Positions 1,184 through 54,209 of a stretch of 61,218 nucleotides of DNA are shown piece after piece. Numbering within the stretch: the stretch's first letter is position 1; each line of letters starts with the position of its first letter. Below the pieces are notes generated by a model. The model had not been told where the DNA came from. It saw only the letters and a program-made list of their open reading frames with translations, and did no database searches. The DNA comes from Guillardia theta CCMP2712 (Eukaryota; Protista; Cryptophyta): NCBI RefSeq assembly GCF_000315625.1, contig NW_005434535.1, positions 29,237-90,454 on the forward strand. The letters run 5' to 3'. Position numbers and translations under genes: made by a program.

Positions 1184-1852
1184 GAGCAATCAGCCTGCGG
1201 AACGAGTGTCAGGAGAGGCAGGCTGCAACCCACACGGTCTGGTGCTTGTTTTCTGCCTCTCCTCCACGCCTTATGTCGGCTCTATCAGAGCCCCTACCAT
1301 CGTCAGCGTTCGCAGCCCCTCGCAGCTCATGTGATATCTACTCCTGGGTGGCTCTCAACTCAAGATGGGGGACTTAGCAGTGATATACACCACAACAGCC
1401 GCGCGTTATGAAAGAGAGGCAGGGCTGGACCTTGACCTCTAGGTCTCTACTTCTTGTATCGTATCGAGACGTGAATGGGGAGCAGCCTCGAGTCGTTGAG
1501 TAGGAGTGTACAGCGTCAGGAGCTGGTGAAGAGCTGTGGCTCAACGCAGGGAAAAGGCCCTGCTTCACGTGTGCAGCATGAAGTTGCTCTCTGTCTCTGA
1601 GTTCTCCCTGCTTTTCTTCTCTCTCACTCTCTCCCTTCACCTCCCTCTCGCTCTTTTCTCACAGGCACACGCATATTCTCTCTCTCCTCTGCCTCCCCCT
1701 CCTCCTCCTCCTCCTCCCTCCCACCTTGCTCACTCTCAGTCCCCCTCCCCTCCCCTCCCTCCCTTTTCCCTTCCTCCCTTACCCCCTCCCACTTCCTCTG
1801 GTGTTTATCTTACCAGCCAGATGTGCTTGCTCAGGCTCAGAGGAGGGGGGGG

Positions 1853-2372
1853 GGAGGACTACTCTGCACAGTGACACAGGTGGAGGAGGCTGGGGTACCA
1901 GGACGGAATGCGATTCAAGTCGGATTGGAATTTCTTCCAGTAATATTGAAAGTTTTAAGGATCCTAAAGGGGTGGGTACCCGAAAGTTGCCGGCTCGGTC
2001 CCCGGGCCCGGCGGCGCATGTAACACGGGTGATGAACCCCACAGAAATAGGGGTGGTCGTCTCACTGAGGTTGATGCGCTACCTTACCCTGATGATTTCA
2101 AGCTCTCCCTGGTCAAAAGGACCGGTACTTGAGGAGGCTGGGGGAACAGGACGGAATGCGATTTCAAGTTTCTATTGGACTGACATGATGCACTACCTTA
2201 CCCTCATGATTTGAAGCTCTATCTGGTCAAAAGGACCGGTACTTGCAATGAAGTTTGCAAGTTCCCAGTTCTCAGCCCATCTACCGCCTACACCGCAGCC
2301 GCATCAATCGCTCCGACCATCCCCTTCCCCCCAGCCTCCTCCACCTGTGTCACTGTGCTGAGTAGTCCTCCT
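1853..2372. repeat. ~43-bp inverted repeat pair enclosing two interleaved direct repeats
   Basis: ggaggactactctgcacagtgacacaggtggaggaggctgggg (~1853-1895) is the reverse complement of ~2329-2371 with 1 mismatch. Inside, ~1884-1920 is repeated at ~2131-2169 and ~2073-2131 at ~2187-2245. Confidence 0.8.
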
Positions 2373-2534
2373 CCTCCTCCCTCTCTCCTCTCTCTCCCCC
2401 TCCTCACCTTCCTCCTGCCCTCCTTCCTCTTCCTCTCTAAAACCCTTAACCTTCCCTTCAGCCCTCCTGCCTTGGCTCTCAACCTCTACTTTCCGGCGCT
2501 TCTTCAAGTCACAGCAGGAATTGCCGTGAGATGT

Positions 2535-3422
2535 CAAGCTGCTGATGGAGAGCGAGACGGTATCGGAGCAAGACCTGGAGCTTGAGAAGGCGTTCTGCGG
2601 GCAGCAGAGCTTCGCGGTGATTAAGCAGCATCTGCATCCATCTAAAGGGAAGCGGGCGCATGTGTACATATCGGATACGGCATGCAGGATACTAGGGCTA
2701 CATGCGGAGGAGGCGCTGGCAAGGATCGCGAGCAGTCCGCTGAACCTCTACACGCGCATCCGAGATCTAGGGAGCAACGGGGATACAGGCTGCGTGGTGA
2801 CGAGGTTTGCGCAGCAGGAGGAGTTCGACAGTGTCAGGGCTCATAGGAACCGAGCTCGAGTCAGACAAAGGTTGATTGGAAAGAAAGGACAGTTGGCTGT
2901 CTCGTACTCGTGTTTGATACTGGCTTCTCCTGGATACACCTGGATACTCTACCCCAGTGTGAATCTGCTGAAAAGGACCCCTCTGGAGGTCTCTGTAGCT
3001 GGAACCGTGAATGTGCCTGTGGTGCTTTCAAGCTAAGAGGACGGGGATCTCTTCCCTACGAGAGAGCAAGGTTCCTTCTCGAAGTGCTGATGGGATGTTC
3101 CACATCTAAGGAGGGAGAGCAGAGGACACCCCCGCTTCCTCCATCGATCTACCCCTAGTCCGAGTCCCTTAGCCTGTATAAGGGTCAGCCTGTTCAGCTA
3201 GAAGGGTCTGTCCTCTCCTCATGCGCTATTCCACGCTGATCCAGCATCGCTAGTAAACTCGACATCACTACACTACACCTCTACGTGTGATCCAGCCGAG
3301 GTGACTTGAACATTCGCTGTAGCCTTCACGTTGCAACCCGTGAAGCTTCGGGGGGTGACAGACTGACATGGCGCGGGTGAGATCGATGAAGACGTAAATG
3401 CTTCCGGTGAGACTTGCATGGG
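2535..3422 (+). pseudogene. Inverted, internally deleted fragment of zinc-cluster TF paralog 1, interrupted by a solo LTR
   Basis: 2545-2829 encodes MESETVSEQDLELE...VYISDTACRILGLHAEEALARIAS|PLNLYTRIRDLGSNGDTGCVVTRFAQQEEFD, matching paralog 1 but lacking the RELSL..TSPGR segment. Homology resumes at ~3361-3422 (gtgagatcgatgaagacgtaaatgcttccggtgagacttgcatgg) with a TAC>TAA stop. Confidence 0.85.
2832..3360. mobile_element. Solo LTR (529 bp) of an LTR retrotransposon
   Basis: Begins TGTCA (2832) and ends TGACA (3360). Flanked by gacag (2827-2831) and gactg (3361-3365), a 5-bp TSD with one mismatch of the gactg in the uninterrupted paralog (gagttcgactgccatgg). Internal TATAA (~3177) and AGTAAA (~3252). 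Confidence 0.8.
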
Positions 3423-3971
3423 CCTTCCATTCGGCGAGTCCGACGACGGTGGAAAATCCGCGGCAGGTGAAGGTCGTCACTGAGTCTGATCAAGGAATGT
3501 TAAGTTCACCTGTTATGAATTTAGTTTGTTGTCTTGAGAGTGACAGATCCTCACCGTCACTGACCCCGGCGGGCCGGTACTAGCCGCTTCAACGGTGCCC
3601 GGGCCGGGCACTGCCGGCTATCATAGTAATCTGTCACTGAGTGCCAGATCATGGCAAAGTGCGTTCGGCGGGAGCCTCTGGGCCCGATTGTGTCCAAGTC
3701 TCACCTCCGAGTCTCATCGGTCGCAGGCCCGGGGGCGCGGCGGCCGCTCGGACTCGGGCAAGCCGCTCAGTGCCCTTCCAGACCCCCGGAGTCACTCACT
3801 CCGCCGCGAGGGCCGCCCCGGCGCCGGGCCGCCACCGGACTCCGGGACCTCCGTTGGCACGTGCAACTACCCCACCCTTCACTGCATTTTGATCATTCAA
3901 GTAGGATGGTAGGGTAGGGTGATGTCAGTTCAAGAGCCCATAGGCGCAATGATTTCGCAAGCAGAAAATCA

Positions 3972-22853: not shown

Positions 22854-24611
22854 TCAAAACATTCCATTGAACTGTCCTTCCCGGTGCAGGATCCTCTCTG
22901 CATGCTCCACAAACGGATGGTACATCCGCTCCAGGTCCCTCCCAAGCGCCTCCAGCCGCTCCATCCCCTGCTTCGACTTCTGCATCCCCAAGATCGTCTC
23001 CCCCTGCTCCCTCCCACCGTCAGTCGCTACAGCAAGCAGCCAGCCTCTCCTGCTCACCGCGAACATGTCGGACTCGAAGTCGTTCATCCAAGTCTTGTAG
23101 TCCTTCCCTCCTCTCATGTGCTTTTCAAACAGAGCAGCGGCACTCCCCGGCGGCTCCGCCGAGGTCTCCAGCCCTTCCTTGTCCAGCTGCAGCTTCCCAG
23201 TCAGCCTCCCTGCCTCCCTCCTCTCTCTCCTTCCCCCTCCCCCATGCAAGTCTCACCGGCAGCATGTACGTCTTCATCGACCTCACCCGCCCATGGCAGT
23301 CGAACTCCTGCTGCTGCACAAACCTCGTCACCACGCAGCCTGTATCCCCGCTGCTCCCTAGATCTCGGATGCGCGTGTAGAGTTTCAGCGGTCGCCCCGG
23401 GCTCGTCGCATACAACCAGGTCCCGAACATTACGTAGCACAAGTAGTTGAACTCCGTCGTGATCAGCGACAGCTCCCTGCTCGCGATCCTCGCCAGCGCC
23501 TCCTCCGCATGTAGCCCGATGATTTTGCACAGGATATCCGATATGTACACATGCGCCCGCTTCCCCGTAGATGGATGCAGATGCTGCTTGATCACCCCGA
23601 AGCTCTGCTGCCGATACAAACTCCTTTCAAGCTCCAGGTCATGCTCCGATGCCGTCTCGCTCTCCATCAGCAGCTTCGCTTGCGGAGCCCGAGCTTTCTT
23701 CTCCATCTTGTCCGCCATGATAATCTCGACGGCATGCAGCGCTCGTCGCGTCACCTGCTGCAGGTAAGGAGGAAGCGAGACGAAGATGTTCATCAGCTCC
23801 TTGGAGCTGAAGCCGAACTCCCAATGTCGGGCCAGCACTCGGTCCGGCCAGCCCATGGAGTTCATATGCTCGCGCAGCAGGGACGGTCTATCGAAGGAGA
23901 GGCTGCGGATCCAGAAGTCGATCGGCCTCTCTACCTGCAGCTCCTGCATGCGAACTGGCCGGCTCGTCGGCAAAGTGTCATCCGATGGGGCATGTACAGC
24001 TTCTAGACACCGGCCATCCACAGCCTCGTCCTCCCTTTGTGTCAATGCCAACATGTGCGACGGGATGAACTCGGGATCTTCGTAGGTGCAATTTGCTTCC
24101 TTGTGCTGGCGCTTGCAGCGCAAGCACGGGCGACCCTCGTCGCACTTTACCTTTGACCGCCGGCAAGGAATGCAAGCAATCGAGCCCCTCTGCTTGAACT
24201 CGCTTGCCTCCCTGACCCTGATGCATTGGTCCGCGATGTCGCTGGCCAAACATCTGGTGGTACACCGTAACATGTCACTCATCGCACATGTGCCGAATCT
24301 TAGGATACGAATCCGCCACTGGAAACAAGCATGGAAGAGATAAGAATGCTACACAAGGTCAAGCAGGGCTTGACAAGGCTAGAAATGCTTGTTGTCTACG
24401 AAGAAGAGAAGGACTGGACTTGCGAAAGGGGATTTTTCACAACTGTCATGTTTGTGTTGTGATAATGGATAAGAGTGATATCAACATGTGCACACAGCAG
24501 CAGAAGCAAGCTAAGCTTCTTTCCACACTCTCACCTCGTGCAAGGTTGGAAGTTATCACACTTACTCCTCGAATCCTTGCATGGCTTGCATGCTAGTCGC
24601 GTCCTGGTCAT
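22854..24611 (-). CDS. Tandem Zn(II)2Cys6 + PAS-like transcription factor, paralog 2
   Basis: Exon MTRTRLACKPCKDSRSKCDNFQPCTR, intron 24534-24254, then CLASDIADQC...ACIPCRRSKVKCDEGRPCLRCKRQHKEANC. C-terminal VYISDILCKIIGLHAEEAL...QQQEFDCHGRVRSMKTYMLP, and terminal exon ...LERMYHPFVEHAERILHREGQFNGMF*. Confidence 0.88.
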
Positions 24612-25213
24612 CACCCGGATAGTTCTGCCGTACCATACCATGTCAGACGAGTTTCAGCCTTTGATCTAATATTCTAAGTAGTCGCGGAGCTTCTTGGTTC
24701 TGCTGATGCTACTTCGAACTCATCATGACAAAAGCCGATGTACCTGTTTACCTGTCTACTTGTTTACCTGTCTACTTATCTATTGCTCCATCTGTTTACA
24801 TATCTACATCTTGTCTGTCTCCTCTCCTCTCCTCTCCTCTCCTCTCCTCTCCTCTCCTCTCCTCTCCTCTCCTCTCCTCTCCTCTCCTCTCCTCTCCTCT
24901 CCTCTCCTTGCTTCTCCTTTTCCTCTTGCCCTTCATCGCTTGCTCGAACATGTCTTATTGACTGAAACATGTCAGTCCTCAATATCTCAAGACACATTCC
25001 CCTTGTAAAGACATACTTACCAGCTTTTTCTTTCAAAAAAAGAAACTCAAAAAAAAAACAAAAAGAACTTTTCAAAAGAACTGATCGTTTGCGTGCTCGT
25101 CTGTTTCGGCAGTATCGCTCTCGCATGGGTCTTGCCGTCCTCCTCGCAGGAGCCTTCTACTGCTCTTTGTCCTGATCCTTGTTCCCCTGCTTGTCGTGCA
25201 TGCCGTCGCTTGC

Positions 25214-25318
25214 GTGGTTGGAGTAGCGGTTTTCGCTGCTTCCTCCGTTTCCTAGTATTTTATTGAGGCGGGTTTGTAGGGTTTATCCTCCCCTCCTTTG
25301 TTTGCTCGGGTTTGCCTT
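25214..25318 (+). promoter_or_regulatory. Conserved ~105-bp non-coding element, inverted copy of 39447-39553
   Basis: gtggttggagtagcggttttcgctgc...ctagtattttattgaggcgggtttgtagg...ctcctttgtttgctc.ggtttgcctt is the reverse complement of 39447-39553 with few substitutions. The regulatory role is inferred from its position. Confidence 0.55.
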
Positions 25319-26527
25319 TGCTTCTCATCAGTCATTAAAAGGACAAGATTCGCGATCAGACGGATCCGGGACCCCTTCGTTTCATGTCCTGAAGGAACTG
25401 AAGGGAGATGGTAAGAGGGAGGAGAGGAGCGCTGGCGGAAGGAAGGAGGAGGAGGATGGAAGGGAGGAGGAGGAAGCTGACCTGCCGAAAGGCCTCTGTG
25501 CCTTCCTTCCTTGCTGCAAGCATCTCCTTTCTGTCCTTTAATGCCTGCGAATCAACTTGGCGTCAGAGCATGGGAAGGGGTAGAGCCCTGGGAGATGAGA
25601 GCGGGAAAGGGGCTGAGGGTCAAGAAAGCATGGAAGGTTGACGACAGAGGAAAAGGGGGCATGAAGAGGAGCAGGAGCAACAGGACCTCCTCCTTTGTCT
25701 GTCGGATACATCCCCACCATGGGCAGCCCCCGACATGCACATGCGCCGCCCACCTGGAAGGAGAATCAGAAGGGAGCGCACGCGTGAGGGCAGAGTAGAG
25801 GAGAGATGAAGGGATTCTGAAGAGAGAGGAAAAGAGCGAGGGGGGGGGGAGAGGAGAGGAGAGGAGAGGAGAGGAGAGGAGAGGAGAGGAGAGGAGAGGA
25901 GAGGAGAGGAGAGGAGAGAAGGGAGGGGCAAGCAGGACAAGGCAGATCTAGAAAGAAAGAGGAAACAGAAAGAGCATGTCAGGGAGGGATCACTTCTTAT
26001 TCGGCAAGAGGGTAACGCCCCTTGGCGCTTTGGACTTGAAGGACTCGAAGACCTTCGCCTGGAGATCAAGACAAGTGAGAACGTGCGGGTCTGGGAGGAA
26101 GAGGAGGTGACGGAGAGGACCAGGATGGGATCGAAGCAGCACGCAGGGTCAAGGCAGCGTGCGAACTTTACCTGCATCGCCGAACGGCGATCATGGGGCA
26201 AGGAGGAAAGGCGGGTGTTGTGAACCAGCTTGTTCACTCTTGCGAGGGTCTCTGCAAGCCAGCAGCGAGTGAGGAAGGAGATTCAGTCAGTTATTCAGTC
26301 AGTCAGTTCAGTCTTCCCCCTACCTTGACTCATTGCAACGTGCTCGCCCATCCCCCTCGTCAAAGATCGCAAAGACTCTCTTATGCGGATCAGAACCTTG
26401 AAAGCAGCAGTCATTCCCTCTCAACTCTTGCCCCCGCCCCTTCCCTCCTGTCTCCTGTCCTGATCCAACCACCAACCCGCTCTAGTTCGCCCTCGCAACG
26501 CTGGTACTTACCCTGTCATCGTTGGTC

Positions 26528-37392: not shown

Positions 37393-39114
37393 TCACAGCA
37401 AGTTGGCGTTGCGCTGCATCCTCAAGATCTGCTCGGCGATGGCTACCACCGGCAGGAACTTCTCCTCGATGTCCTTCGCCAACAGCCGGAGCCTCTGCTC
37501 TCCCTCCAGCGTCTTCTGCATCCCTTCCATCGTCTCGCTCTGCCAGAACTTGTCGTCACTCCTTCCTCTTCCTGCCTCCTCCACCACCACCACCACCACC
37601 ACCACCTCCTCCTCCTCCTCCTCCTCCTCCTCCTCCTCCTCCTCCTCACCGCGAAGAGGTCAGGCTCCATGTCGTCTATCAGCATGTCGTAGCCTCTCCC
37701 TGCGATGGCATGCTTCGAGACAGCCATCAGAGCACTGCTGTCATGCTCCACGGCATTTTCAAACTCTCTCCTGCTGACCTGCCCAGCTAAGGCTCAGCGG
37801 CAACGAACGGGAAGAGGAGAGGTTGACCCACCGGAATGATGCAGCTGTTAAAGGCGATCACCCGGCCAGCGGCGTCAAACTCCTGCTGCTGCAACAGCTT
37901 TGCTACGAGGCAAGAGGAAGCTTGGTTTTCTCGAAGGTCCCTCACCCTCACGAAGCTTTCAAAGGGCTTGCTGGGATGCAGGGTCAGGGACAAAGTTCCG
38001 AGCATGGCATAGCAGAAATAGCTGAACTCCGTGGTCATGATAGGGAGCTCCCGGCTCCCCAGCCTTGAGATCATCTCCTCCACATGCAGCCCAAGCATCC
38101 GAGAGAGACTTTCCGACACGTACACCTCAGTCCGCCTCCCCGTCACGGGATCGATGCTCAGCCTGGCAACGCCGACCTCACTGATGGCGTTGTAGAAGAT
38201 TTGCTTAATCTGACTCGCGTTCCTCGCGTCTGAAGTTCCATCCAATGGAGCCTGCGCAGCCTTCGCCTTATGGAACTGCATGATGACTTCAATCGCATGG
38301 AAGGCCCGTCTCGTCACGATCTCCAGGTATGGCGGGAGCGTGTGAAACACCCTCATCAGCTGCCTCGCATCGAACCCGAACATGCACTGTTGCGAGAGCA
38401 GAAAGCTCGGCCACCCCATCTTGACCACTCGCTCTTCCAGGAGCGAAGCTTGATCGAATTGGATCGCTCGAGTGTTGAAGTTGAGCGGCCATTCTACAGT
38501 CGTCAACCCCTTAGCACGAGTCCTCTGCATCTCCCCTCCCTTCCGTTCAGCCCCTCCCTCCCGTGCAGTCCCTCCTTCCAACACAGCCTTTCCTTCCCGC
38601 GCACTTCCTCCTCCCTCACTCGCAGTCCTCACTCGCCTTGCATTCCGCCTGGTCATTGCCGGCACTGCCTCCTGCTCATCGTCGACGCACATAGCCTCCT
38701 TCCCCAGCCTCACGCAGCGTGAGCATGGCCGCTGGTCATCGCACTTGGTCTTGATGCTCCGACACACTACACAAGCGATGCCGGCCCTCTTGCTGCCGCC
38801 ATACCCTGCCTCTTGGGACCTTCTGATCCGGACACACTTGTGCGATAGTCCGAACCCAACACACCTGCAGGGACTCTGTGACCTCCTTCACTCCCTCGGC
38901 TCCCTCACCTCGAACACGGCTGCTGCTCGTCACATTTCTGCTTCGCATCTCTGCAGGGCTTACAGGCAACCCTCATCCGAGGCTGCCTGCTTGCTGGGAG
39001 CTCCTCTGCATTGCCCCCAGAGTCCTCCTCCCCGCTAGTCACTGACCGCCCTGCTGATCCGCTCTCCTCGCCCTTGATCCCCGACGCAGATCCATCCTCC
39101 CTCACAATCATCAT
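37393..39114 (-). CDS. Tandem Zn(II)2Cys6 + PAS-like transcription factor, paralog 3 (diverged)
   Basis: MMIVRED...RVACKPCRDAKQKCDEQQPCSR, 44-nt intron 38908-38865 at the same position as in paralogs 1 and 2, then CVGFGLSHKC...ACVVCRSIKTKCDDQRPCSRCVRLGKEAMC. VYVSESLSRMLGLHVEEM...QQQEFDAAGRVIAFNSCIIP; last exon ...LPVVAIAEQILRMQRNANLL*. Confidence 0.88.
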
Positions 39115-39356: not shown

Positions 39357-40299
39357 TCTTTATCCCCCATCCTCTCCCCCTCCCCCTCCCACTCCCCCCT
39401 CTCCCTACCTGTCTGTTCTGGAGAGTGTGCATTTTGACTGAAAAGAAAAGGCAAACCGGAGCAAACAAAGGAGGACGAGGATAAAGCCTACAAACCCGCC
39501 TCAATAAAATACTAGGAAAACGGAAAAGGCAGCGAAAACCGCTCCTCCAACCACTGAGTGACTGGCATGCAAGCCGCCCGACACTGAGCAGCCGTTGTCA
39601 TGGATGACTGTATCAGACCTCATGAGGCCTTCGAAGCAGGCCGCATGGATATCGCAGTCAGCTTCAAGAAAATCGCAGTCAGCTTCAAGAAAACGCAAAC
39701 GGAATGAGAGATTAACATAGGAAGGGTGTGAAATGAATGCCTATTTCATGGTGTATGATTGAATGATACCGCTCTTCGCACATTCCGACCTTCGATGAAT
39801 GACATGAAAGGTAGAAAGGGAGTGACTTGAAATGTCACCAATGACTCGATGATGCTAGAACCATTCATGATACGCCCGGCCCGGCTCACCTTTCGCAATC
39901 AACAAAGCAGCATCCTATGCTGATGTGGCGGCATTACTCGCTCCTCTTTGGACCTTTTTCACTGATCAATGATGGCCATGAAGATTGTATCTGACGGTAC
40001 GGTGACCGTATTCAAAGTACATCATCTAATGTCACTGACTGAGTGTTGAAGTTGCTGGCAAAGTACCTCATGCAGTATAGGGTGATGGGGAACTCAGGGC
40101 CCCCTAAGTATTAATGAAATCTTACAGATATCATTAAAATGTCACTTTCCAGCACATGACATGACAAGAAGGAGGTCCACCATTACATCGAAGAGGATCA
40201 TACGAACGGTACTGGACGAGAACTCTGTATCTTGGACAGGTTGGAATCTGCCATTTGTGGCATTATTTTCTCTGAAATATTGAAACAGGGAATGCCCCA

Positions 40300-41115
40300 A
40301 GAGTTTACCCTATTCATTTCGATCAATTAGACGCAGACTATTTATCATTTCTGTATGTGGATCACGCATCTGCTAAGCGTTTCACCGAACAATGGTTTTG
40401 CAACTTACAGTAATCATCGATCGGCAATAAACAGCTTTTTCAGAGATTTTCAGAAAGACCTACGGCTGGAATTCAAGAATGCTCTTCAAGAATGTTACGT
40501 TGGCCTCAAGAAAGATTTGAATCAGATGGATGCAACAAGTGTGCTGGAGATAACAACAGGCAAAGAACCTATGAGCATGACAACCTATCGTTTGTTTTGC
40601 AAAACCATGATGTTTTCCGACAAGAGATATTACATCTTCGCTCGCAACTTTCTCATCATTTGTTGGAATCTTATGTGTCGCGCTGGAAACGCCGAATCTA
40701 TTCACTTCAACGGTTCAACCACATGTGCTGGAATGAAGATCGTCTCCAAACTTTCTTTGCCCACTCGAAAACAGATCAGAGCGGTGACAAGCCTGGAGAC
40801 CCCAAGAGACTCTATGCAAATCCAGTCCATCCAGAGATCTGTCCCATATTGGCATTGGGAATTTATTTGCTTTTGCTATCTACCAGATGAACTCTCCCTG
40901 TTTCCAGGCAGATCGCGTTTCGTGCAGGTTCTTTCGAAAATAATGATGCCACAGAATCAATCAGCAGCCCCGAGTGACACTGATGAGACCGCGGAAAGGC
41001 ATGATGATCATAATGGTATGGATGCAGATCAGACTGCAGTGACTGCCCATCTGCGTTCACTCGGTTTATAACCAGAGGATCTTGGAAGTCTGTTACTCTA
41101 TTAGGAAGAGGGCAG
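40300..41115 (+). pseudogene. Crypton (CryptonS-like) tyrosine recombinase, frameshifted, copy 1
   Basis: TYSNHRSAINSFFR, GKEPMSMTTYRLFCK, FARNFLIICWNLMCRAGN (catalytic Arg box), HMCWNEDRL..FFAHSKTDQSG..PGDPKRLYANPVHPEICPILALGIY, LFPG..RF, and a disrupted DLGS.SIRK (HxxR box). At least 3 frameshifts or stops; the catalytic-Tyr segment was not found. Confidence 0.8.
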
Positions 41116-41466
41116 TGAGAATATGAGATCAGTGTGCGTTGCAAACGAGCTATGTGTTTCAGATGCAACGATCAATCAGACCGCGGCGCAAGTTTCGAGT
41201 TATGCTTTTGTCCTTGAAGAGTTGGGAGCTTGACACCGGGAACCTTTTGACCTCAACCATCGCTTGCCAAATCGCACGCCTAGTTTGAAGCACTTTACTG
41301 ATAATGCATGAACCATGCCGCTCAGTCACACTATCATCACGGCTGTCATCAGGGCCTCACGCCTTCCAGCGCGGCTGATCGCTCCGGGCCCCAGGCAGCT
41401 CCGAGCGCTTTGAGCCTTGTACGGTCCGAGTCCTTCCTGTGAGCCCTGGTTGATGTCCGATCAAGC

Positions 41467-42309
41467 TCAGCTGCCAGGCTTCGAGGGCGAGGCTGGTTGG
41501 ATCTTGCCGTTGGCTAATCGACATACGATCTTTCCCCCGTCGTCGATGAGGAAAACATCCATGTCTCTTGCAATGGACCCGAGGCCCTGCAACTTCAAGA
41601 GCACGCATGCGATCGCCTGGGCGAGCGGCGATGGCCCTCCGACGAAGTAGCCGGCTGGTGCTTTCACGCGAGAATGCAAAGGCTTGGAGATCTCATGCAT
41701 CAGGCCTGAAAGCTCGTTTGCTACTGATGCGTGGCTGCAGGCCAGGTTGTACTGGTTTGCAAGCTGATTGCACACGCTCACGCAATCTGGTCGAAGCTTA
41801 CGCGATTTGCGTTGCTTTGGATTTTGCAGCAGATGTTTAGCGATGAAATGATCGAGCGCTTGCGTTGTAGTCATGCCAGGAAATTTGCGAAGCAAGCCGA
41901 TCTCGATCAAGGCTCTGTTGTTGAGCACTGCATGTCGGCTGGATTCTGTCTGAAGGCATTTCTCCCTCGCCTCAGCTAAGGAACGGCGTGTATCCTGAAG
42001 CAAACCCTGAGATATCTCCAGCTGCGCTGCCTTGTCCTTCTTGAGCTCTTGTAGCTGCGCTTGCTTGTCATTGTACATTTCTTCTAGCGCTGTGAAAGCA
42101 TTATTCAAGTTTTCGCGATGATCTGGGGCAATGAGGACTCGATTCAACGCATTTTGGAATATCATTTTCAGCGGCTGCAACGCTGCGCCGCATGTTTCTT
42201 GCTGTCTCTCACCAGCATACTCTTTCTTCTTGTCTGTTCTCCTCTTCTTTCTCCGGTCCATTTGTACATGTTCTCCACGTCTCTTCCCAATACCACATGT
42301 GCTCGACAT
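41467..42309 (-). CDS. Intronless cargo gene: basic N-terminus, coiled coil and unknown globular C-terminal domain (280 aa), copy 1
   Basis: Intact ORF with an NLS-like RRKKRR, a QLQELKKDKAA coiled coil and a C-terminal domain (VLNNRALIEIGL...GLMHEISKPLH...YFVGGPSPLAQAIACVL). The frame is also intact in copy 2. Confidence 0.7.
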   Translation of the reverse strand: MSSTCGIGKRRGEHVQMDRRKKRRTDKKKEYAGERQQETCGAALQPLKMIFQNALNRVLIAPDHRENLNNAFTALEEMYNDKQAQLQELKKDKAAQLEISQGLLQDTRRSLAEAREKCLQTESSRHAVLNNRALIEIGLLRKFPGMTTTQALDHFIAKHLLQNPKQRKSRKLRPDCVSVCNQLANQYNLACSHASVANELSGLMHEISKPLHSRVKAPAGYFVGGPSPLAQAIACVLLKLQGLGSIARDMDVFLIDDGGKIVCRLANGKIQPASPSKPGS

Positions 42310-42959
42310 TCTCGTACGCCAAAGGTTTGTGGCTCTTATCCACCCCTTGATATTGCACTTCCACCACCACCCCCTACCCTGATCGGATCATGGATGTAGG
42401 TAGCTTTCTGTCGGAAACTGACGGGTGGGTGGGGTGGGTACTCCACCCACCATACAAAGGTTAAAGACGCGACTGGGAAAAGGGCGGGAAGGATCAGCAA
42501 ACTTGTCACTGCGAGTCAAGTTCCTGAGGCATCCAATCATGGTCATGTTCCTGTGATGTTCCGGAGGCATGTGATGGTACCGTTCGCTCTCAGGCTCCGA
42601 CGACTTTGACTTTACATTGGCCCGGCCGGAGTGCAAGCTAGTGACATTGGTTACAACTTAGCTCGTCCCCGCGATACAGCATGTTGCGAACTTGGGAACG
42701 TTTTCATCATACTCAAGAACCGTGGCATACTAGGCTTAGAAAGCTGTTTGAATTACACCAAACTCGTGCTCTCAGCCGCGCCGAGTTCAATGGCACAACA
42801 CTCAAATACTCATGGCAAACAAAGCAATGAGTGAAATAACAACAACCTCTTGAATGACGGGCAGGGCAGCGACAACGCAGAAAGGGAGAGGACTGGTGAG
42901 GCTGCCGCAAGCGAGGCAGCCTCCGGCGAAGCAGGCGACGTTGAAGCAACCGCTGCCAT

Positions 42960-43386
42960 AGACATATGATGCATGGATTCTCTGGCACTTTGGAAATGCA
43001 GGGCGAGGACATAAACCTTTCAAACAAGTGAGGGGCACAGATTTCTCCCCAGCAACCTCGGACGGTCGAAGGCTGAGTGATGTGCGATACCTCATCAAAG
43101 TGATAGACAGAGAAGCAAGAGCCTTGAGCATTTACAATAGCGATCTAGATAAGGAAGAAGCAGACTTCATATATCAGCAATGTGAGAATGTCTTGATGGA
43201 AGAATACGAGCGAGTCACAAGATTGAGAGACTGGAGGCGATAGATGGACGATTCTCTGAGTTGTCATGGATGACAGTGTCAGACCTCATGAGGCCTTCGA
43301 AGCAGGCCGCATGGATATCGCAGTCAGCTTCAAGAAAATCGCAGTCAGCTTCAAGAAAACGCAAACGGAATGAGAGATTAACATAG
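42960..43386 (+). pseudogene. C-terminal (GCR1_C-like) portion of the Crypton ORF, spanning the unit 1/unit 2 junction
   Basis: YDAWILWHFGNAGRGHKPFKQVRGTDF...RRLSDVRYLIKVID...RLRDWRR*, then LSWMTVSDLM...RKRKRNERLT*. This resembles from memory the W.LW..G..PF...DF...RLSD.R.L...LSW.TV tail of stramenopile-type Cryptons. Confidence 0.6.
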
Positions 43387-43965
43387 GAAGGGTGTGAAAT
43401 GAATGCCTATTTCATGGTGTATGATTGAATGATACCGCTCTTCGCACATTCCGCCCTTCGATGAATGACATGAAAGGTAGAAAGGGAGTGACTTGAAATG
43501 TCACCAATGACTCGATGATGCTAGAACCATTCATGATACGCCCGGCCCGGCTCACCTTTCGCAATCAACAAAGCAGCATCCTATGCTGATGTGGCGGCAT
43601 TACTCGCTCCTCTTTGGACCTTTTTCACTGATCAATGATGGCCATGAAGATTGTATCTGACGGTACGGTGACCGTATTCAAAGTACATCATCTAATGTCA
43701 CTGACTGAGTGTTGAAGTTGCTGGCAAAGTACCTCATGCAGTATAGGGTGATGGGGAACTCAGGGCCCCCTAAGTATTAATGAAATCTTACAGATATCAT
43801 TAAAATGTCACTTTCCAGCACATGACATGACAAGAAGGAGGTCCACCCTTACATCGAAGAGGATCATACGAACGGTACTGGACGAGAACTCTGTATCTTG
43901 GACAGGTTGGAATCTGCCATTTGTGGCATTATTTTCTCTGAAATATTGAAACAGGGAATGCCCCA

Positions 43966-44782
43966 AGAGTTTACCCTATTCATTTCGATCAATTAGACGC
44001 AGACTATTTATCATTTCTGTATGTGGATCACGCATCTGCTAAGCGTTTCACCGAACAATGGTTTTGCAACTTACAGTAATCATCGATCGGCAATAAACAG
44101 CTTTTTCAGAGATTTTCAGAAAGACCTACGGCTGGAATTCAAGAATGCTCTTCAAGAATGTTACGTTGGCCTCAAGAAAGATTTGAATCAGATGGATGCA
44201 ACAAGTGTGCTGGAGATAACAACAGGCAAAGAACCTATGAGCATGACAACCTATCGTTTGTTTTGCAAAACCATGATGTTTTCCGACAAGAGATATTACA
44301 TCTTCGCTCGCAACTTTCTCATCATTTGTTGGAATCTTATGTGTCGCGCTGGAAACGCCGAATCTATTCACTTCAACGGTTCAACCACATGTGCTGGAAT
44401 GAAGATCGTCTCCAAACTTTCTTTTGCCCACTCGAAAACAGATCAGAGCGGTGACAAGCCTGGAGACCCCAACAGACTCTATGCAAATCCAGTCCATCCA
44501 GAGATCTGTCCCATATTGGCATTGGGAATTTATTTGCTTTTGCTATCTACCAGATGAACTCTCCCTGTTTCCAGGCAGATCGCGTTTCGTGCAGGTTCTT
44601 TCGAAAATAATGATGCCACAGAATCAATCAGCAGCCCCGAGTGACACTGATGAGACCGCGGAAAGGCATGATGATCATAATGGTATGGATGCAGATCAGA
44701 CTGCAGTGACTGCCCATCTGCGTTCACTCGGTTTATAACCAGAGGATCTTGGAAGTCTGTTACTCTATTAGGAAGAGGGCAG
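43966..44782 (+). pseudogene. Crypton tyrosine recombinase, frameshifted, copy 2
   Basis: Same motifs as copy 1. One extra T (tttcttttgcc, ~44420) rejoins WNLMCR and AHSKTDQ into one ORF (44021-44557). Confidence 0.8.
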
Positions 44783-45133
44783 TGAGAATATGAGATCAGT
44801 GTGCGTTGCAAACGAGCTATGTGTTTCAGATGCAACGATCAATCAGACCGCGGCGCAAGTTTCGAGTTATGCTTTTGTCCTTGAAGAGTTGGGAGCTTGA
44901 CACCGGGAACCTTTTGACCTCAACCATCGCTTGCCAAATCGCACGCCTAGTTTGAAGCACTTTACTGATAATGCATGAACCATGCCGCTCAGTCACACTA
45001 TCATCACGGCTGTCATCAGGGCCTCACGCCTTCCAGCGCGGCTGATCGCTCCGGGCCCCAGGCAGCTCCGAGCGCTTTGAGCCTTGTACGGTCCGAGTCC
45101 TTCCTGTGAGCCCTGGTTGATGTCCGATCAAGC

Positions 45134-46099
45134 TCAGCTGCCAGGCTTCGAGGGCGAGGCTGGTTGGATCTTGCCGTTGGCTAATCGACATACGATCTTT
45201 CCCCCGTCGTCGATGAGGAAAACATCCATGTCTCTTGCAATGGACCCGAGGCCCTGCAACTTCAAGAGCACGCATGCGATCGCCTGGGCGAGCGGCGATG
45301 GCCCTCCGACGAAGTAGCCGGCTGGTGCTTTCATGCGAGAATGCACAGGCTTGGAGATCTCATGCATCAGGCCTGAAAGCTCGTTTGCTACTGATGCGTG
45401 GCTGCAGGCCAGGTTGTACTGGTTTGCAAGCTGATTGCACACGCTCACGCAATCTGGTCGAAGCTTACGCGATTTGCGTTGCTTTGGATTTTGCAGCAGA
45501 TGTTTAGCGATGAAATGATCGAGCGCTTGCGTTGTAGTCATGCCAGGAAATTTGCGAAGCAAGCCGATCTCGATCAAGGCTCTGTTGTTGAGCACTGCAT
45601 GTCGGCTGGATTCTGTCTGAAGGCATTTCTCCCTCGCCTCAGCTAAGGAACGGCGTGTATCCTGAAGCAACCCCTGAGATATCTCCAGCTGCGCTGCCTT
45701 GTGCTTCTGGAGCGCTGCCTTGTCCTTCTTGAGCTCTTGTAGCTGCGCTGCCTTGTCCTTCTTGAGCTCTTGTAGCTGCGCTGCCTTGTCCTTCTTGAGC
45801 TCTTGTAGCTGCGCTTGCTTGTCATTGTACATTTCTTCTAGCGCTGTGAAAGCATTATTCAAGTTTTCGCGATGATCTGGGGCAATGAGGACTCGATTCA
45901 ACGCATTTTGGAATATCATTTTCAGCGGCTGCAACGCTGCGCCGCATGTTTCTTGCTGTCTCTCACCAGCATACTCTTTCTTCTTGTCTGTTCTCCTCTC
46001 ACCAGCATACTCTTTCTTCTTGTCTGTTCTCCTCTTCTTTCTCCGGTCCATTTGTACATGTTCTTCACGTCTCTTCCCAATACCACATGTGCTCGACAT
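45134..46099 (-). CDS. Cargo gene copy 2 with in-frame repeat expansions (open frame extends upstream to 46381)
   Basis: Same protein as 41467-42309 plus a duplicated 12-aa RRTDKKKEYAGE, three QLQELKKDKAA units and an extra AALQKHK-type unit. Confidence 0.7.
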   Translation of the reverse strand: MSSTCGIGKRREEHVQMDRRKKRRTDKKKEYAGERRTDKKKEYAGERQQETCGAALQPLKMIFQNALNRVLIAPDHRENLNNAFTALEEMYNDKQAQLQELKKDKAAQLQELKKDKAAQLQELKKDKAALQKHKAAQLEISQGLLQDTRRSLAEAREKCLQTESSRHAVLNNRALIEIGLLRKFPGMTTTQALDHFIAKHLLQNPKQRKSRKLRPDCVSVCNQLANQYNLACSHASVANELSGLMHEISKPVHSRMKAPAGYFVGGPSPLAQAIACVLLKLQGLGSIARDMDVFLIDDGGKIVCRLANGKIQPASPSKPGS

Positions 46100-46616
46100 C
46101 GTAGGCAGGTTTGTGGCTTTCGCTTCTCCACCCCTTGATATTGCACTTCCACCACCACCCCCTACCCTGATCGGATCATGGATGTAGGTAGCTTTCTGTC
46201 GGAAACTGACGGGTGGGTGGGGTGGGTACTCCACCCACCATACAAAGGTTAAAGACTCGACTGGGAAAAGGGCGGGGAGGATCAGCAAACTTAACTTTGA
46301 GTAAAGAGCAAACTTGTCAGTGCGAGTCAAGTTCCTGAGGCATCCAATCATGGTCATGTTCCTGTGATGTTCCGGAGGCATGTGATGGTACCGTTCGCTC
46401 TCACTGAGTCAGGCTCCCGCAACTGTGACTTGAACCCCCCGCGCCACCCCGGGCCCGGGCCGCCGACTCTGGCGGCAGCCGGGCGTCCGACTCCGGCGTG
46501 AGCCGGTCCCAGAGGAAGTTCCGACCCGGGCCGCGCCCGGGCACTCAGTGACTGGCCAGGCAGCCAGCCGGGGGCCGCTGTCCGGTGATCCCGGCTACCG
46601 TAGCCTAGTAGTGTTC

Positions 46617-48577
46617 CATTCTGTAGGATTTTGGCCGTCAGGAGGGTAGTCCCTGGGAATCGAGGGGTGGTTTAGGGATTTCAGTTATTTGTACCAGGTA
46701 ATTTGAGACCTTACGAAATTGATTTGAAATGTTCACTAGAATAATTTTTATATGTCGATAACAGTACAAAGTGAAAAATATTTTATTTTGCTGCCTCATT
46801 GTCCTTTACCCCTTCCCTGATGCTGGCATAGATGCAAACTATCTGCTGATGCTGATGTGGACCATTGGATGAGAAGCAGCTGAGAGAGACAATGACACAG
46901 GTGAACCAGAAGCTCAACATGCATGTGTGCTGGAAGGCTTGCGACGGATGTGTGATTCGGAAGCTTACATGTGTGCTTTGAGTTTTTCAATGAGAGTTTT
47001 CCTCCAAAATATTTTATTTTGCTGCCTCCTTGTCCTTTGCTGATGTGGACCATTGGATGAGAAGCAGTTGAGAGAGACAATGACACAGAAGGTATCGCAG
47101 ATATCTGGAAGCCATGCAGCCCAATGATCGTTGTGAGAGCATTCAAACGGATAATCTCCGTGTTTCACTTCCCTTGTTACAACACTGCGCGCTGGAGAGT
47201 TCACAGATACTCTGCAGAGATGACTAGCTTCTCAAGAGACTTTCAGATAGAATTCCAGCAAGAAAAGCATGCAGGCTTGATTTTGACATATATATTCCTG
47301 GATTCAAATGAATAATTGCTGTGTCGCAGAAAATTATTGTTGATGCAAAGCTTGACATCTGACTTGCAGCGAAAAGCAGCACACTTGCTGCTCAGATGCA
47401 GAGATGTTAAACCAAGCTTTATTTGAGAGGACCCTCAACTTTGGTTTAGTAAACTATCGTTAAGCTCAAATTTAATCTACCATATTGAGTGGAGGAGGTT
47501 ATCTAACATATGGAAACACACTCTGACAATCTGATTATCACGATCAGAAAATCACAAGTGTTGCATGAATCAGTATCGTAGACCATAAATTTTATAGGAG
47601 AACATCCGCTTCGCACCTGCCTAGAACATTTAAAATGAGGCTACCTACATCTGATTGATGGTACAATGCAGCTATGAGGAAAGCTTCACGCATTTGGGAA
47701 ATTTCCTCAAATTTTTCCTGGCCCAAACTTTCTTCATTGTCACGAGTCTTTCCATACCATCTTCGAAGAAGCAACATCCTCTTCATACATTTACATGTGT
47801 CCATGCTTCTTCATACGTTTGCATGTGTCCATGTTAACTGTTGCAGGTTCTGACAGAAATCCTGTGTAAACCTCAGAATGTGCTTCATAGGGGTTGAGAA
47901 GGTAAATATGACTGGGCGGCTCATCTGCATGAAAATCTTCAAGGCTATTCAAAACTTTCCAAACATGAGGAGGATACGATTTATCCTAGACAAACACATG
48001 ACGACAACGCTTTGTGTTGTGTTGCTCCCGGCATGTAACATGCCAAAGCCCCATTGACGGTGAAATTCGCATCCTTGCTTGCCATGCAGTGTTGCTTGTA
48101 GAAAGAGAATGCTTGGGATCTCGAGAGACTCTGCTCAATCATCACAATCTCATGCTCTGTTGTAGAATGATGCCATTCCAAACATGAATCCTCTTTGGCT
48201 GCGGTGGGACGATTTCCACCCACCCCACATAGATTTTGGGCTAAGCAGTACCGGTATGTTGTGACATTCTGTACGGGATTGGAAGTTCCTGGTAACAATA
48301 TGTAAACATCATGTATCTGTTTATATATATAAAAATAAATAAAACGAAAATGGTACAAATGTCTAACTGACTCATACAAAAATAGCTATCAGATATTTGA
48401 ACAAAAACACGCTGTATTAAAAACTAATTCAACGACCCCTCTCAAACAATCCAGGTACCACCACCCCCTTATTCAGGGGAAACCACCGGGTCATTAGTCA
48501 TAACCGGTACTGGGAGATCGAGAACTGACAAAAAGCCACTTTTCCTTGGTTTTTCCTGGGCGAAATCCTACAGAATG
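46617..48577. mobile_element. ~1.96-kb non-autonomous or degenerate DNA transposon with 15-bp perfect TIRs
   Basis: cattctgtaggattt (46617-46631) and aaatcctacagaatg (48563-48577). AT-rich interior with an internal direct repeat (~46776-46900 vs ~47007-47088). Absent at the equivalent site in unit 1. No clean TSD or intact transposase seen. Confidence 0.75.
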
Positions 48578-49224
48578 TGACTGTCATTAGCCGGCCCGGG
48601 GATGACAAGTTCGTGAGGCTGAAGGCTTCACCCTCTCGGAGCCTCAGCGGCCACCAGATCAGCCGCTTCGAGGCCCGTGACCGTCATACACTGAGGCTAG
48701 GCCCGTCTTCCATCGGGGAGTCACCGTGAGTGAGTGACATGTCACGGTTACAAGCTCGCCGGAGTCCCCGCGATACAGCATCCGATGACGGTTGCGAACT
48801 TGGGAACATTTTCATCATACTCAAGAACCGTGGCATACTAGGCTTAGAAAGCTGTTTGAACTACGCCGAACACTTGCTCTCAGCCGCGCCGAGTTCACAG
48901 TGGCACAACACAACACAATACTAATTGCAAACAAAGCAATGAGTGAAATAACAGCCTCAAGGGCTAATCGCCCCGACAGCAGAGGTACAACTTGAATTCA
49001 GAGAGCCAGTAAGGCGAAAGAGCCCTTGCTGCCTTGGCGGAAACAAGGGAAGTGAAGACCGTAACTTCTCTAGCTGCTCACTCGTGATCTATATGAATCC
49101 TTGCTTCAGAGGCCTTGAAAAACTTGGCAGAGCTCTCATTGGCATATAAGCAGAGGTGTCTGATAGTCATCATACGTTCGTCTTTTACTGCACGAGCCGC
49201 AGCATCTTGAAGGGCCTCCGCATC

Positions 49225-49947
49225 TCAACGCTCGAAACCATGCCGCTTGATGAAACGATTGCACCACCCCTTGCTCGCCACAAACCCTTCCACCCCCAGC
49301 TCTCTCGCGATCTCCCCTGCCCTCTTGCGGGTCTGCTTCCTCCACTGCTTGTCGTCGAGGTTCGCCTCCACAAACTCGTGCAGCCTTCGCTCCAGCTCCA
49401 AGTTGTGAGTCCTCGCACAGCAGCTCTGCGAGGCCTCCACCCCCACGCTGTGAATCGATCGCAGCCTTGCGATGTTCTCCGGCCGCAGGATCTTGGAGAT
49501 GGCAGACTTGCTCTTGCCGTAGCGAGCCGCCAGCACAGCCTGCGGGGTGCGGTTGCACTCATGGTCTTGAGCGATGGCGAGCTTCTCGGCGATAGTGAGC
49601 TTGGTCTTGCTGCGGCAGGAGAGGCTGTGGGATGCTTTGCGCGACTCGGTCCACGAGGAGGAGCCAGAGCGAGGCGCTTGCGGGACAGGCGAGGGCGAGG
49701 AGCCTCTGGAATGCGCAGGAGCAAGGGGTATCGCTTCGATGCCTTCGGGAGGCAGGGGTCTTGAGAGGATCTCCTGATCAAAGCTGGTACCGTGTTCGCC
49801 GTACAGGACACGGTGTATGGGGTCGCTGGGCGCTCGCTCGAAGGTGGCGCAGTCTTGGCAGTCATGGAATAGCAGGAAAGACGAGGAGAAAGGATCAGAC
49901 TCCAGGGGGCAGGATGCGGTCGTCTCAAAGAGAAGGAGTGCAGTCAT
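49225..49947 (-). CDS. CENP-B/pogo-type helix-turn-helix DNA-binding protein lacking a DDE domain, copy A
   Basis: KTKLTIAEKLAIAQ...QAVLAARYGKSKSAISKIL (psq-type HTH) and LELERRLHEFV...KRAGEIARELGVEGFVASKGWCNRFIKRHG (HTH_Tnp_Tc5 signature), then a stop. Confidence 0.85.
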   Translation of the reverse strand: MTALLLFETTASCPLESDPFSSSFLLFHDCQDCATFERAPSDPIHRVLYGEHGTSFDQEILSRPLPPEGIEAIPLAPAHSRGSSPSPVPQAPRSGSSSWTESRKASHSLSCRSKTKLTIAEKLAIAQDHECNRTPQAVLAARYGKSKSAISKILRPENIARLRSIHSVGVEASQSCCARTHNLELERRLHEFVEANLDDKQWRKQTRKRAGEIARELGVEGFVASKGWCNRFIKRHGFER

Positions 49948-51766: not shown

Positions 51767-52471
51767 ATGTTTCAGACGACCGCATTCACCGCCCTGGAGT
51801 CTGATCCTTTCTCCTCCTCTGTCTTCCTACCAGAGCGGCAAGACTGCGCCACCTTCGAGCGAGCGCCCAGCGACCCCATACACCGTGTCCTGTACGGCGA
51901 ACACGGTACCAGCTTTGATCAGGAGATCCTCTCAAGACCCCTGCCTCCCGAAGGCATCGAAGCGATACCCCTTGCTCCTGCGCATTCCAGAGGCTCCTCG
52001 CCCTCGCCTGTCCCGCAAGCGCCTCGCTCTGGCTCCTCCTCGTGGACCGAGTCGCGCAAAGCATCCCACAGCCTCTCCTGCCGCAGCAAGACCAAGCTCA
52101 CTATCGCCGAGAAGCTCGCCATCGCTCAAGACCATGAGTGCAACCGCACCCCGCAGGCTGTGCTGGCGGCTCGCTACGGCAAGAGCAAGTCTGCCATCTC
52201 CAAGATCCTGCGGCCGGAGAACATCGCAAGGCTGCGATCGATTCACAGCGTGGGGGTGGAGGCCTCGCAGAGCTGCTGTGCGAGGACTCACAACTTGGAG
52301 CTGGAGCGAAGGCTGCACGAGTTTGTGGAGGCGAACCTCGACGACAAGCAGTGGAGGAAGCAGACCCGCAAGAGGGCAGGGGAGATCGCGAGAGAGCTGG
52401 GGGTGGAAGGGTTTGTGGCGAGCAAGGGGTGGTGCAATCGTTTCATCAAGCGGCATGGTTTCGAGCGTTGA
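51767..52471 (+). CDS. CENP-B/pogo-type HTH protein lacking a DDE domain, copy B (inverted duplicate)
   Basis: Protein identical to copy A from QDCATFERAPS to the stop; diverged N-terminus. Confidence 0.85.
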   Translation: MFQTTAFTALESDPFSSSVFLPERQDCATFERAPSDPIHRVLYGEHGTSFDQEILSRPLPPEGIEAIPLAPAHSRGSSPSPVPQAPRSGSSSWTESRKASHSLSCRSKTKLTIAEKLAIAQDHECNRTPQAVLAARYGKSKSAISKILRPENIARLRSIHSVGVEASQSCCARTHNLELERRLHEFVEANLDDKQWRKQTRKRAGEIARELGVEGFVASKGWCNRFIKRHGFER

Positions 52472-54209
52472 GATGCGGAGGCCCTTCAAGATGCTACTGA
52501 GGGGCAACCAGATCTGTTAAGATTTTTTACTGGAACACTTTTGATGGGTAGCAGGACGCAAATACTGCTCTAGAACCACCCGCCTACTTTTCTTTGTCTC
52601 TGATTCTTCCCTTTGTTCTTGTTATCTTTCCCAGACAGATTCCAGTAGGACATTCTAAGTACTGAGGCTCGGTGAGCGCGCAGTCTTGCTGACAACTGAA
52701 ACTATGAACTCACACTCAGCGCACGCTCAAAGCACGTCCGCTGCCATCGCTGACTTGAAGCTCAAGAGTAGTGATATGACGTTTATTCCAGATGCATCTC
52801 AAATACAATAGAGAAGACCATAGCTTCTCTTCCTGCCCACTCGCGCTTTATAAGAATCGATGATGATCCTTGCTGCCGCGTGTGCGCCGGGAGGCTTGAG
52901 CTCACCTTCGCAGGGCTCTGATACCCTCTCCAGTATAACCAGGCTTGACTTCGTGTAAACCTCCGCCATGGCAGTTCGAGCTCTCGAGCTCGTGCTCTTT
53001 TCCGAAGTTCCTGTCAGACGTCCTCACCATACTGTCACTTGCAATCCGACCATTTTCCAATCCGATGATCAACATCACTGTTGAACTTTCCGAAGGGGCC
53101 CGGGGCTGGCCGCGCCCGGGACGGGTCGGCCGGGCAACTTGGCAAGCCTCTCCAGCCGCCCGGGCCCCTGCCTTACTCGGACCTGCAGGCTTCCGACTTG
53201 GTTCACCACTCGATGAGACGCACTGAAGCCCTGAACTTCTCGCGTCTGAAAGAACTTCGGAGAGTCTTCTGAGCCTGGGTTGTCAGAACCAAGCCTTCTT
53301 ACCGTGGCACACGGCGGACTCCGAGCCTGAGTCGGGCCTGGGTTACTCAGTGGGGAGGACCCACGTGCCTTTGTACCTTCGGAAGCCTCATCCGATCCTG
53401 GTGAACGGAGGCTTCGGAACCAGTCACTGGCATGATGATTCACCGTGGCACGGTGGCGCCGCCCGGCAGTCCGGGCCGGCGGCCATCATCAGAGTCCGAC
53501 ACTCGAAGTCACTACCGTGTGCCCGGCCTGTCTTACTCTGACTCGGTTTACTCAAAGTTAAGTTAAAATCAGTACGAGGACAATCAGGAGAGTACCTACT
53601 GGGGTATCAGTGAGACCTCTCATCCTTCCCAACTGCCCTGTGCCGCACCACCCCACCCCCTCTATACCCCTAGTGACTTTCGATTGAGACTACCCCGTCA
53701 CCGCCGCAAAGGACCCCCCTGTTACGGGGAAAGTCAACCTTGATCACTGCAGTACAAGCGAACTGTACCCACCCCTATCTCCCTTTTCTCACCACCCCCT
53801 ACTTTGACCACCATCAGCGGGTTGGGTTCATGTCACCCTCTTGCCTACAATCCATTTGTACTTTCCGTACCTCCACCACTACCCACCCCACCCCACACCC
53901 CTCCAGCAGAATGCTCACCCTACCCCCCCATCATCCCATGGAAACCTCGTCAAAGTTAATTACTATCCCTTACCTCCTACCCCTACCCCTACCCCCCGTT
54001 AGCCCTCTCACCGCTTCATAGCACCCCCTTGGAAGTTCCGACGACCACCCTACCCGTTTGTCATTTAACATCGGGACCAGTTTCACCAGTTTCCTTATCA
54101 AGGACCCCCTCAAATCCCCAGTTTGAGTACCCCCTCTTCCCTGAGAGTTCCCACCCTGACCCCCCATGCTTTTTGCATCCTCAAGTTGTCTTGTTCGAGG
54201 GAAATTTTC

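Follow-up and report, generated by a model that had tools for sequence, protein, structure and literature searches.

CryptonS elements and non-autonomous Cryptons such as CryptonI-1N1_RPro (Kojima & Jurka 2011, PMC3212892), and the fungal cargo-carrying tyrosine-recombinase (YR) elements, Starships (PMC11162782, PMC12134995), are the described systems closest to a 3,666-bp repeat in the cryptophyte Guillardia theta, in which Crypton-derived recombinase sequence stands next to an antisense gene of the DUF8249 family. The repeat lies in a stretch of 61,218 nucleotides (C139:29237–90454; the window, whose first letter is position 1 below) of an 87.1-Mb assembly in 669 contigs, which was the genome searched. 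An earlier note, made from the letters of the window, had taken the repeat for a non-autonomous, gene-carrying Crypton in a cryptophyte-like alga. The host was correctly placed: public sources list paralogs of the antisense gene as hypothetical proteins of G. theta CCMP2712. The locus itself is probably a local two-copy duplication of a mosaic block rather than a mobile unit.

The Cryptons of G. theta resemble CryptonS elements in several respects. They are ~3.5 kb long with a single gene, whose product has a Cre-like fold with R109, HxxR (248–251), W277 and Y289 and a conserved C-terminal region without a GCR1_C match; their best relatives come from oomycetes and diatoms. Short direct repeats (CTTAT) appear to lie at the ends of a copy on contig C2, and TATGG was seen only at the junction where a Crypton of one family (B) meets a copy of another (A). 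Unlike CryptonS, the window contains only dead fragments of these two families, and the ends of family A look like CTTAT, not TATGG. Non-autonomous Cryptons are likewise internally deleted and lack a working recombinase, but they keep both ends of an autonomous partner and occur in many copies, whereas the window unit has neither end of A, lacks the 5′ end of B and occupies one locus. With Starships the unit shares the idea of a YR element joined to accessory genes; Starships, however, carry an intact 'captain' recombinase at one end, have definite borders and occur at more than one site; the window unit shows none of these traits.

Tandem segmental duplication by unequal crossing-over is matched by the presence of adjacent near-identical copies with their flanks, later diverged by a transposon and by repeat length, and by the DUF8249 family itself, which lies in tandem clusters on contigs C47, C80, C154 and C11. 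The difference is that 418 bp are single-copy at the window locus, for which an extra step is needed. In Chlamydomonas reinhardtii, Cryptons cause inversions and translocations whose breakpoints carry the target motif and often a Crypton terminus (PMC9977147). The present case is similar in combining an active Crypton family with structural change near Crypton sequences, and differs in that the duplication boundaries in the window carry neither target motif nor terminus.

Anatomy of the repeat

Self-comparison of the window matched 39594–42088 to 43260–45776 (98.5% identity including gaps), 42020–42592 to 45774–46403, and 42665–42841 to 48764–48953. The direct repeat has a start-to-start spacing of 3666/3667 bp, and the locus is composed of the following features.

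39434–39571, no strand: left flank, a copy of a high-copy dispersed repeat of ~140 bp
39594–43259, + strand: repeat unit copy 1, 3,666 bp (from self-comparison)
39594–40164, + strand: family-B 3′ tail copy 1, the last ~50 codons of the C-terminal open reading frame (ORF; LSWMTV...ERLT-stop) and 3′ non-coding sequence to the B 3′ end
40166–41115, + strand: family-A internal fragment copy 1, the end of an exon-1-like ORF and YR residues 1 to ~255, dead
41467–42309, − strand: copy 1 of the DUF8249 gene for a coiled-coil protein of 280 aa, ORF intact, gene-model protein
42665–42841, no strand: short dispersed-repeat piece 'rep1' (from self-comparison)
42849–43830, + strand: family-B fragment, 5′-truncated, with a frameshifted C-terminal domain and 3′ region
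43832–44782, + strand: family-A internal fragment copy 2, with one extra T at 44422
45134–46099, − strand: DUF8249 gene copy 2, 321 aa
46617–48577, no strand: young terminal inverted repeat (TIR) transposon, copy 2 only, within an extra GC-rich block (46404–48763)
48764–48953, no strand: 'rep2', the last segment of copy 2 (from self-comparison)

The period of 3,666 bp and the head-to-tail orientation given in the earlier note stand, and every feature that it listed is present. The locus does not consist of full units in series. The assembly contains two copies, the second of which stops at unit position 3248 (48953, where the repeat ends) and is without the last 418 bp of the unit. The corresponding segment of copy 1 (42842–43259) is single-copy, with no counterpart in copy 2. 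The layout of the locus is S–T–S′, in which S represents unit positions 1–3248 and T positions 3249–3666. No common motif was found at the repeat boundaries (39594, 42841/42849 and 48953), and none of them coincides with the terminus of B.

Over the first ~3.0 kb the two copies differ by 14 substitutions (~0.5%), a 1-bp insertion or deletion (indel) at 44422, in-frame additions of 87 and 36 bp, and some further small indels on the upstream side of the antisense gene. The far-end segment of 177 bp (42665–42841, compared with 48764–48953) shows ~6% substitutions and five small indels. Beyond 42592/46403, copy 2 contains an extra ~2.36 kb (46404–48763) that is absent from copy 1. Most of this block is a TIR element of ~1.96 kb with 20-nt inverted ends (CATTCTGTAGGATTT...), surrounded by ~350 bp of additional GC-rich DNA, likewise missing from copy 1. 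The genome has about ten other near-full-length copies of the element at 96–98% identity, indicating that the family was recently active, and its presence in copy 2 only is a change that followed the duplication.

Two Crypton families and a DUF8249 gene

Dozens of recombinase loci are present in the genome, several of them with long open frames. The earlier note had asked for an intact autonomous partner, and intact copies exist: 3.5-kb Cryptons of the family to which the unit's YR core belongs (family A) encode a protein of 706 aa, for example on C50 (L003:143-2263:-). Its sequence runs ...NLMCRAGN...FAHSKTDQ...HSIRKG...RAGW...TYLRYE..., and behind this lies a C-terminal block (WxLWxCG...KRxSD) that is conserved among homologs. 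R109, H248, R251, W277 and Y289 are conserved in 14–19 of 20 homologs. Pfam returned no match at all for the 706-aa protein, to GCR1_C or otherwise, and nothing usable for the raw YR pieces of the unit; neither the protein nor a profile of 20 sequences had a match among PDB sequences. The YR fold was settled by fold search alone, in which the predicted structure of residues 1–330 (predicted local distance difference test, pLDDT, 78) matched Cre, Tre, XerH, Flp and Ndc10 with a Foldseek probability of 1.00.

Database relatives of the protein include one from Hanusia phi (39% identity) and many oomycete and diatom proteins, some labelled integrase or Ndc10-domain; the best named matches are from Phytophthora, Aphanomyces, Nitzschia and Hanusia. 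The recombinase homology of the unit's pieces is real, and the intact family-A copies are tyrosine-recombinase Cryptons with the R/HxxR/W/Y set. The assignment of the pieces to Cryptons and their resemblance to CryptonS, both made in the earlier note, appear reasonable given the Cre/Flp/Ndc10-like fold of the intact paralog, the stramenopile and Hanusia relatives and the lack of GCR1_C. A literature search found no published description of cryptophyte Cryptons.

Family-A copies on C50, C502, C2 and C14 are 98–100% identical to one another, and the intact Cryptons of this family are probably active. The element appears to extend from ~555/591 to ~4095 of the L031 reference; the copies on C50, C502, C2, C17 and C216, few of which are complete, share ends near these positions, and CTTAT is found at both junctions of the C2 copy. 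Two copies on C17 (L035/L036, C17:223901-225403 and 231153-233009) share the same internal truncation and lie 7,252 bp apart, and two more on C50 (L031/L034) are separated by ~8.8 kb. Local duplication of Crypton-containing segments seems to be common in the G. theta genome.

The A pieces of the unit (40166–41115 and 43832–44782) are 95% identical to family A, counting substitutions, and cover positions 1318–2263 in L031 (reverse complement), whose element is ~3.5 kb long. They are internal and contain neither A terminus. That the recombinase is dead, as the earlier note had it, is borne out by frameshifts common to both copies (+8 bp at 40705–40712, +1 at 40871 and +4 at 41091–41094), an in-frame TAA (between ...LGL and PEDLGS) and the replacement of H by Y in the HSIRKG box; homology stops just past the DNA of this box. 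A search with 121 recombinase proteins detected no catalytic W/Y half within 36–53 kb, where A and B pieces were the only kinds found. The catalytic segment is indeed missing from the unit.

The second family is represented by a piece (42849–43429 and on to the equivalent of 40164) whose identity is 90% with a copy on C8, 78% with one on C72 and 70–73% with those on C571 and C71. Every match begins at 42849. The B copies remain homologous to one another upstream of the equivalent point, and the window piece is therefore 5′-truncated there; it is also frameshifted. The unit begins inside the C-terminal ORF of the recombinase, at ...E/LSWMTV...ERLT-stop (the stroke marks where it starts), and the family-B fragment crosses the unit junction (43259/43260) unbroken, in line with the earlier observation that the preceding C-terminal domain runs into LSWMTV. 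In the C8 copy (L008, C8:374545-377988) a YR catalytic region of its own lies upstream, and the C-terminal frame is open, closing with ...ELSWMTV...ILT-stop. Compared with the C-terminus of A itself, the C-terminal piece of the unit shows only ~30% protein identity. The YR core and the C-terminal domain of the unit evidently derive from two different Crypton families, not from one decayed Crypton.

For 170 bp from its start the B tail of copy 1 is 96% identical to the C8 copy, and similarity to C8 returns at 40126–40164, where it ends. The C8 copy was seen to have, relative to the window and C72 copies, a deletion of 362 bp in its 3′ non-coding part right after a CATGG. The A fragment begins at 40166 (A position 1318), immediately beyond the end of the B similarity at 40164, and intact A copies read GATATGG just before position 1318. 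TATGG is the common CryptonS terminus and target (PMC3212892). This arrangement suggests that B was inserted into a copy of A by the normal Crypton route, though the bases at the junction match imperfectly.

The antisense ORFs of the two copies (280 and 321 aa) are both intact and present as gene-model proteins, and a precomputed Pfam label (PF26754, DUF8249) is attached to both and to one relative. The protein consists of an N-terminal coiled coil of short tandem repeats and a conserved C-terminal domain of ~165 aa, in which 37 positions are invariant across eight paralogs; both window copies keep all of them. The in-frame expansions of copy 2, 87 bp (containing a 33-bp repeat) and 36 bp, fall in the coiled-coil part, where its protein has three QLQELKKDKAA-type repeats compared with one in copy 1 and a doubled RTDKKKEYAGER. 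The ORF contains four substitutions between copies, all non-synonymous, a number too small for judging selection. At least 20 paralogous DUF8249 loci were found at 34–48% protein identity, including the four tandem clusters named above. A profile of eight paralogs recovered 158 representatives at E≤0.001 among 1.8 billion proteins, and most of the ten clusters looked up lie on environmental contigs of ~1 kb. For a model of the domain (pLDDT 81), PDB and the ESM Atlas offered no convincing structural match.

The window gene is only 48% identical to its closest paralog, in contrast to the 95% identity of the A fragment to live-looking copies, which indicates that the gene has long been in place and that the Crypton pieces came later. 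Separately, a DUF8249 subfamily was considered as a mobile unit of ~1.3 kb with sharp ends and rejected: the sharp ends were those of the query locus, and another query gave lengths of 1.3 to 2 kb.

Origin of the duplication

By the earlier note's own terms, its reading would fall if the combination of recombinase and gene occurred only here, with no shared termini elsewhere, and this is what the genome-wide search for dispersed copies with shared ends found. The composite of B, A and DUF8249 was detected at the window locus only. The middle ~1.5 kb of the unit (positions ~1523–3071) has no other DNA copy in the genome, in searches with the full unit and with 41090–42870; both whole-genome DNA searches scored the best 40 of 173–196 candidates. 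Consistently, no DUF8249 gene lies within 1.5 kb of the recombinase in the ~40 recombinase loci examined. The only Crypton terminus in the unit is the 3′ end of B, which is located internally, and both A termini and the B 5′ end are absent. The unit has no match to DUF3435 or to any other Pfam family, and its recombinase is fragmentary and internal, which sets it apart from a Starship-like element. With a composite that is unique and stripped of these termini, the description as a non-autonomous, cargo-carrying Crypton is not supported. Amplification through circles or tandem integration fares no better: the boundaries of the repeat (39594, 48953) are off the terminus of B, and an array running from unit position 1 only as far as 3248 is unlike the same-site integration of a circle or a circular dimer. 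Local unequal crossing-over, which the earlier note had put forward as the alternative, fits better than the mobile-element model.

We infer the order of events and the mechanism of duplication as follows. A DUF8249 gene, a member of the old family, would have been resident at the site when a family-A Crypton arrived downstream of it, and a TATGG site in this A copy would then have received a family-B Crypton. The left part of A, its catalytic half and the 5′ part of B would have been lost by deletion. Tandem duplication of a block of ~3.7 kb, comprising the B fragment, the A fragment, the DUF8249 gene and the short repeat, may have followed, likely by unequal crossing-over or by an error of replication or repair, and one more event, trimming or filler, would have altered one end. 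After the duplication the TIR transposon entered copy 2, and both expansions of the coiled-coil repeats arose in frame. The Crypton pieces at the locus are passengers, unable to recombine DNA; the DUF8249 gene is the sole part that can still be functional.

Several points weigh against a plain local duplication. A simple single tandem duplication should give two full units, whereas the array consists of a unit plus 3,248 bp, and a second event (deletion of an end or filler synthesis) must accordingly be assumed. The divergence is uneven, ~0.5% in the body and ~6% in the last 177 bp, which points to gene conversion in the body or else to additional mutation close to where the transposon inserted. 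The two copies, 99.5% identical, are known from the assembly only. The Crypton bits beside other DUF8249 paralogs, described below, are a hint of a non-random association, which duplication alone leaves unexplained.

A different mechanism for the same duplication, in which a Crypton YR acting in trans recombined cryptic sites resembling CATGG or TATGG, has a precedent in the Crypton-mediated rearrangements at target motifs in Chlamydomonas (PMC9977147), and CATGG does occur 5 bp past the start of the repeat, as does TATGG at the B/A junction. We nevertheless regard this as unlikely, because no such motif is present at 42841/42842 or 48953/48954, five-base motifs are frequent by chance, and the boundaries of the duplication have no Crypton terminus.

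The assembly, which appears to be an older draft, could also have set two alleles in series, or a repeat that it had collapsed and joined wrongly. Copies ~99.5% identical that differ mostly by indels and one transposon insertion look allele-like. Their contexts differ, however: copy 1 has the 140-bp repeat at its left, and copy 2 the single-copy 418-bp B segment, which continues in register into the tail just as in the independent B copies on C8 and C72. Together with the existence of two distinct gene-model proteins for the two copies, this makes an artefact quite unlikely.

That a DUF8249-carrying Crypton was mobilised in trans by an intact one and amplified through circles or tandem integration is very unlikely, in spite of the same-family Cryptons in the genome that are intact and probably active, the one genuine terminus inside the unit, the Crypton fragments adjoining other DUF8249 paralogs and the known occurrence of a second gene in some CryptonS elements and of non-autonomous Cryptons (PMC3212892), since the missing termini, the confinement to one locus and the misplaced boundaries all speak against it and the 48% identity of the closest paralog leaves no recent capture from another locus.

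Neighbouring repeats and Crypton debris at other DUF8249 loci

The surroundings of the duplicated block contain further repeats and genes. Directly to its left, an ORF of 326 aa (37787–38767, − strand) opens with a Zn(2)-Cys(6) binuclear cluster domain of the fungal type (PF00172, E=3e-6). The ~140-bp dispersed repeat at 39434–39571 ends 22 bp before the duplication and has at least 40 copies at 86–94% identity (the best 40 of 186 candidates); it also occurs, inverted, at 25197–25327. At least 35 relatives of the rep1/rep2 piece (42672–42776 and 48764–48953) occur at ~72% identity, and many lie no more than a few kilobases from contig ends (for example C19:433-519, C9:622-708, C13:1060489-1060575), which suggests a subtelomere-associated repeat.

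To the right, 49201–49857 and 51839–52495 form an inverted repeat of 657 bp whose arms are 100% complementary and lie 1,981 bp apart. Each arm contains an ORF with a Tc5/pogo-type helix-turn-helix (PF03221, E=1.7e-8); the structure reflects either the very recent duplication, as a palindrome, of part of a pogo-like transposase or a fault of the assembly. Farther away, a direct repeat of 706 bp (93% identity) occupies 1–706 and 23242–23947, 23 kb apart, with related inverted pieces at 2536–2829.

Crypton-derived bits were also observed beside other DUF8249 paralogs (L024:2346-2522, L028:913-1234, L029:1125-1229 and C14:67403-72864). The paralog on C14 has a family-A copy 3.3 kb away, and on C41 a YR remnant of 60 aa lies convergent to the DUF8249 gene, 240 bp beyond its stop. 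A piece of 320 bp on C11 is 86–95% identical to the C-terminal coding region of the C79/C34 Crypton, and about 105 bp of it, 95–96% identical to the same Crypton, are shared with the paralogs on C80, C154, C94 and C16. The possibility that the C11 fragment is a spliced retrocopy was rejected, as the missing 148 bp are coding in the C79 Crypton and not an intron.

The proximity of Crypton and DUF8249 sequences exceeds that expected under a uniform null, but local repeat density may explain it, the loci being patchworks of many short repeats. A non-random linkage of Cryptons to tandemly amplifying host gene families in G. theta, here DUF8249, seems to us rather doubtful. If it were true, Cryptons would either insert preferentially next to such genes or, through their recombinase or their homology, drive local duplications, and the locus would be a snapshot of Crypton-assisted expansion of a gene family.

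As a local duplication of a mosaic block, the locus is ordinary genome history, and it illustrates how a plausible 'cargo-carrying transposon' can arise by nested insertions, deletions and local duplication. The analysis also revealed several Crypton families in G. theta with intact Cre-like recombinases, a likely insertion of one Crypton into another at a TATGG site, and in DUF8249 a tandemly expanding family of coiled-coil genes whose repeat length is changing fast. Of wider interest would be only the possible, unproven tendency of Crypton debris to lie near expanding gene families more often than by chance.

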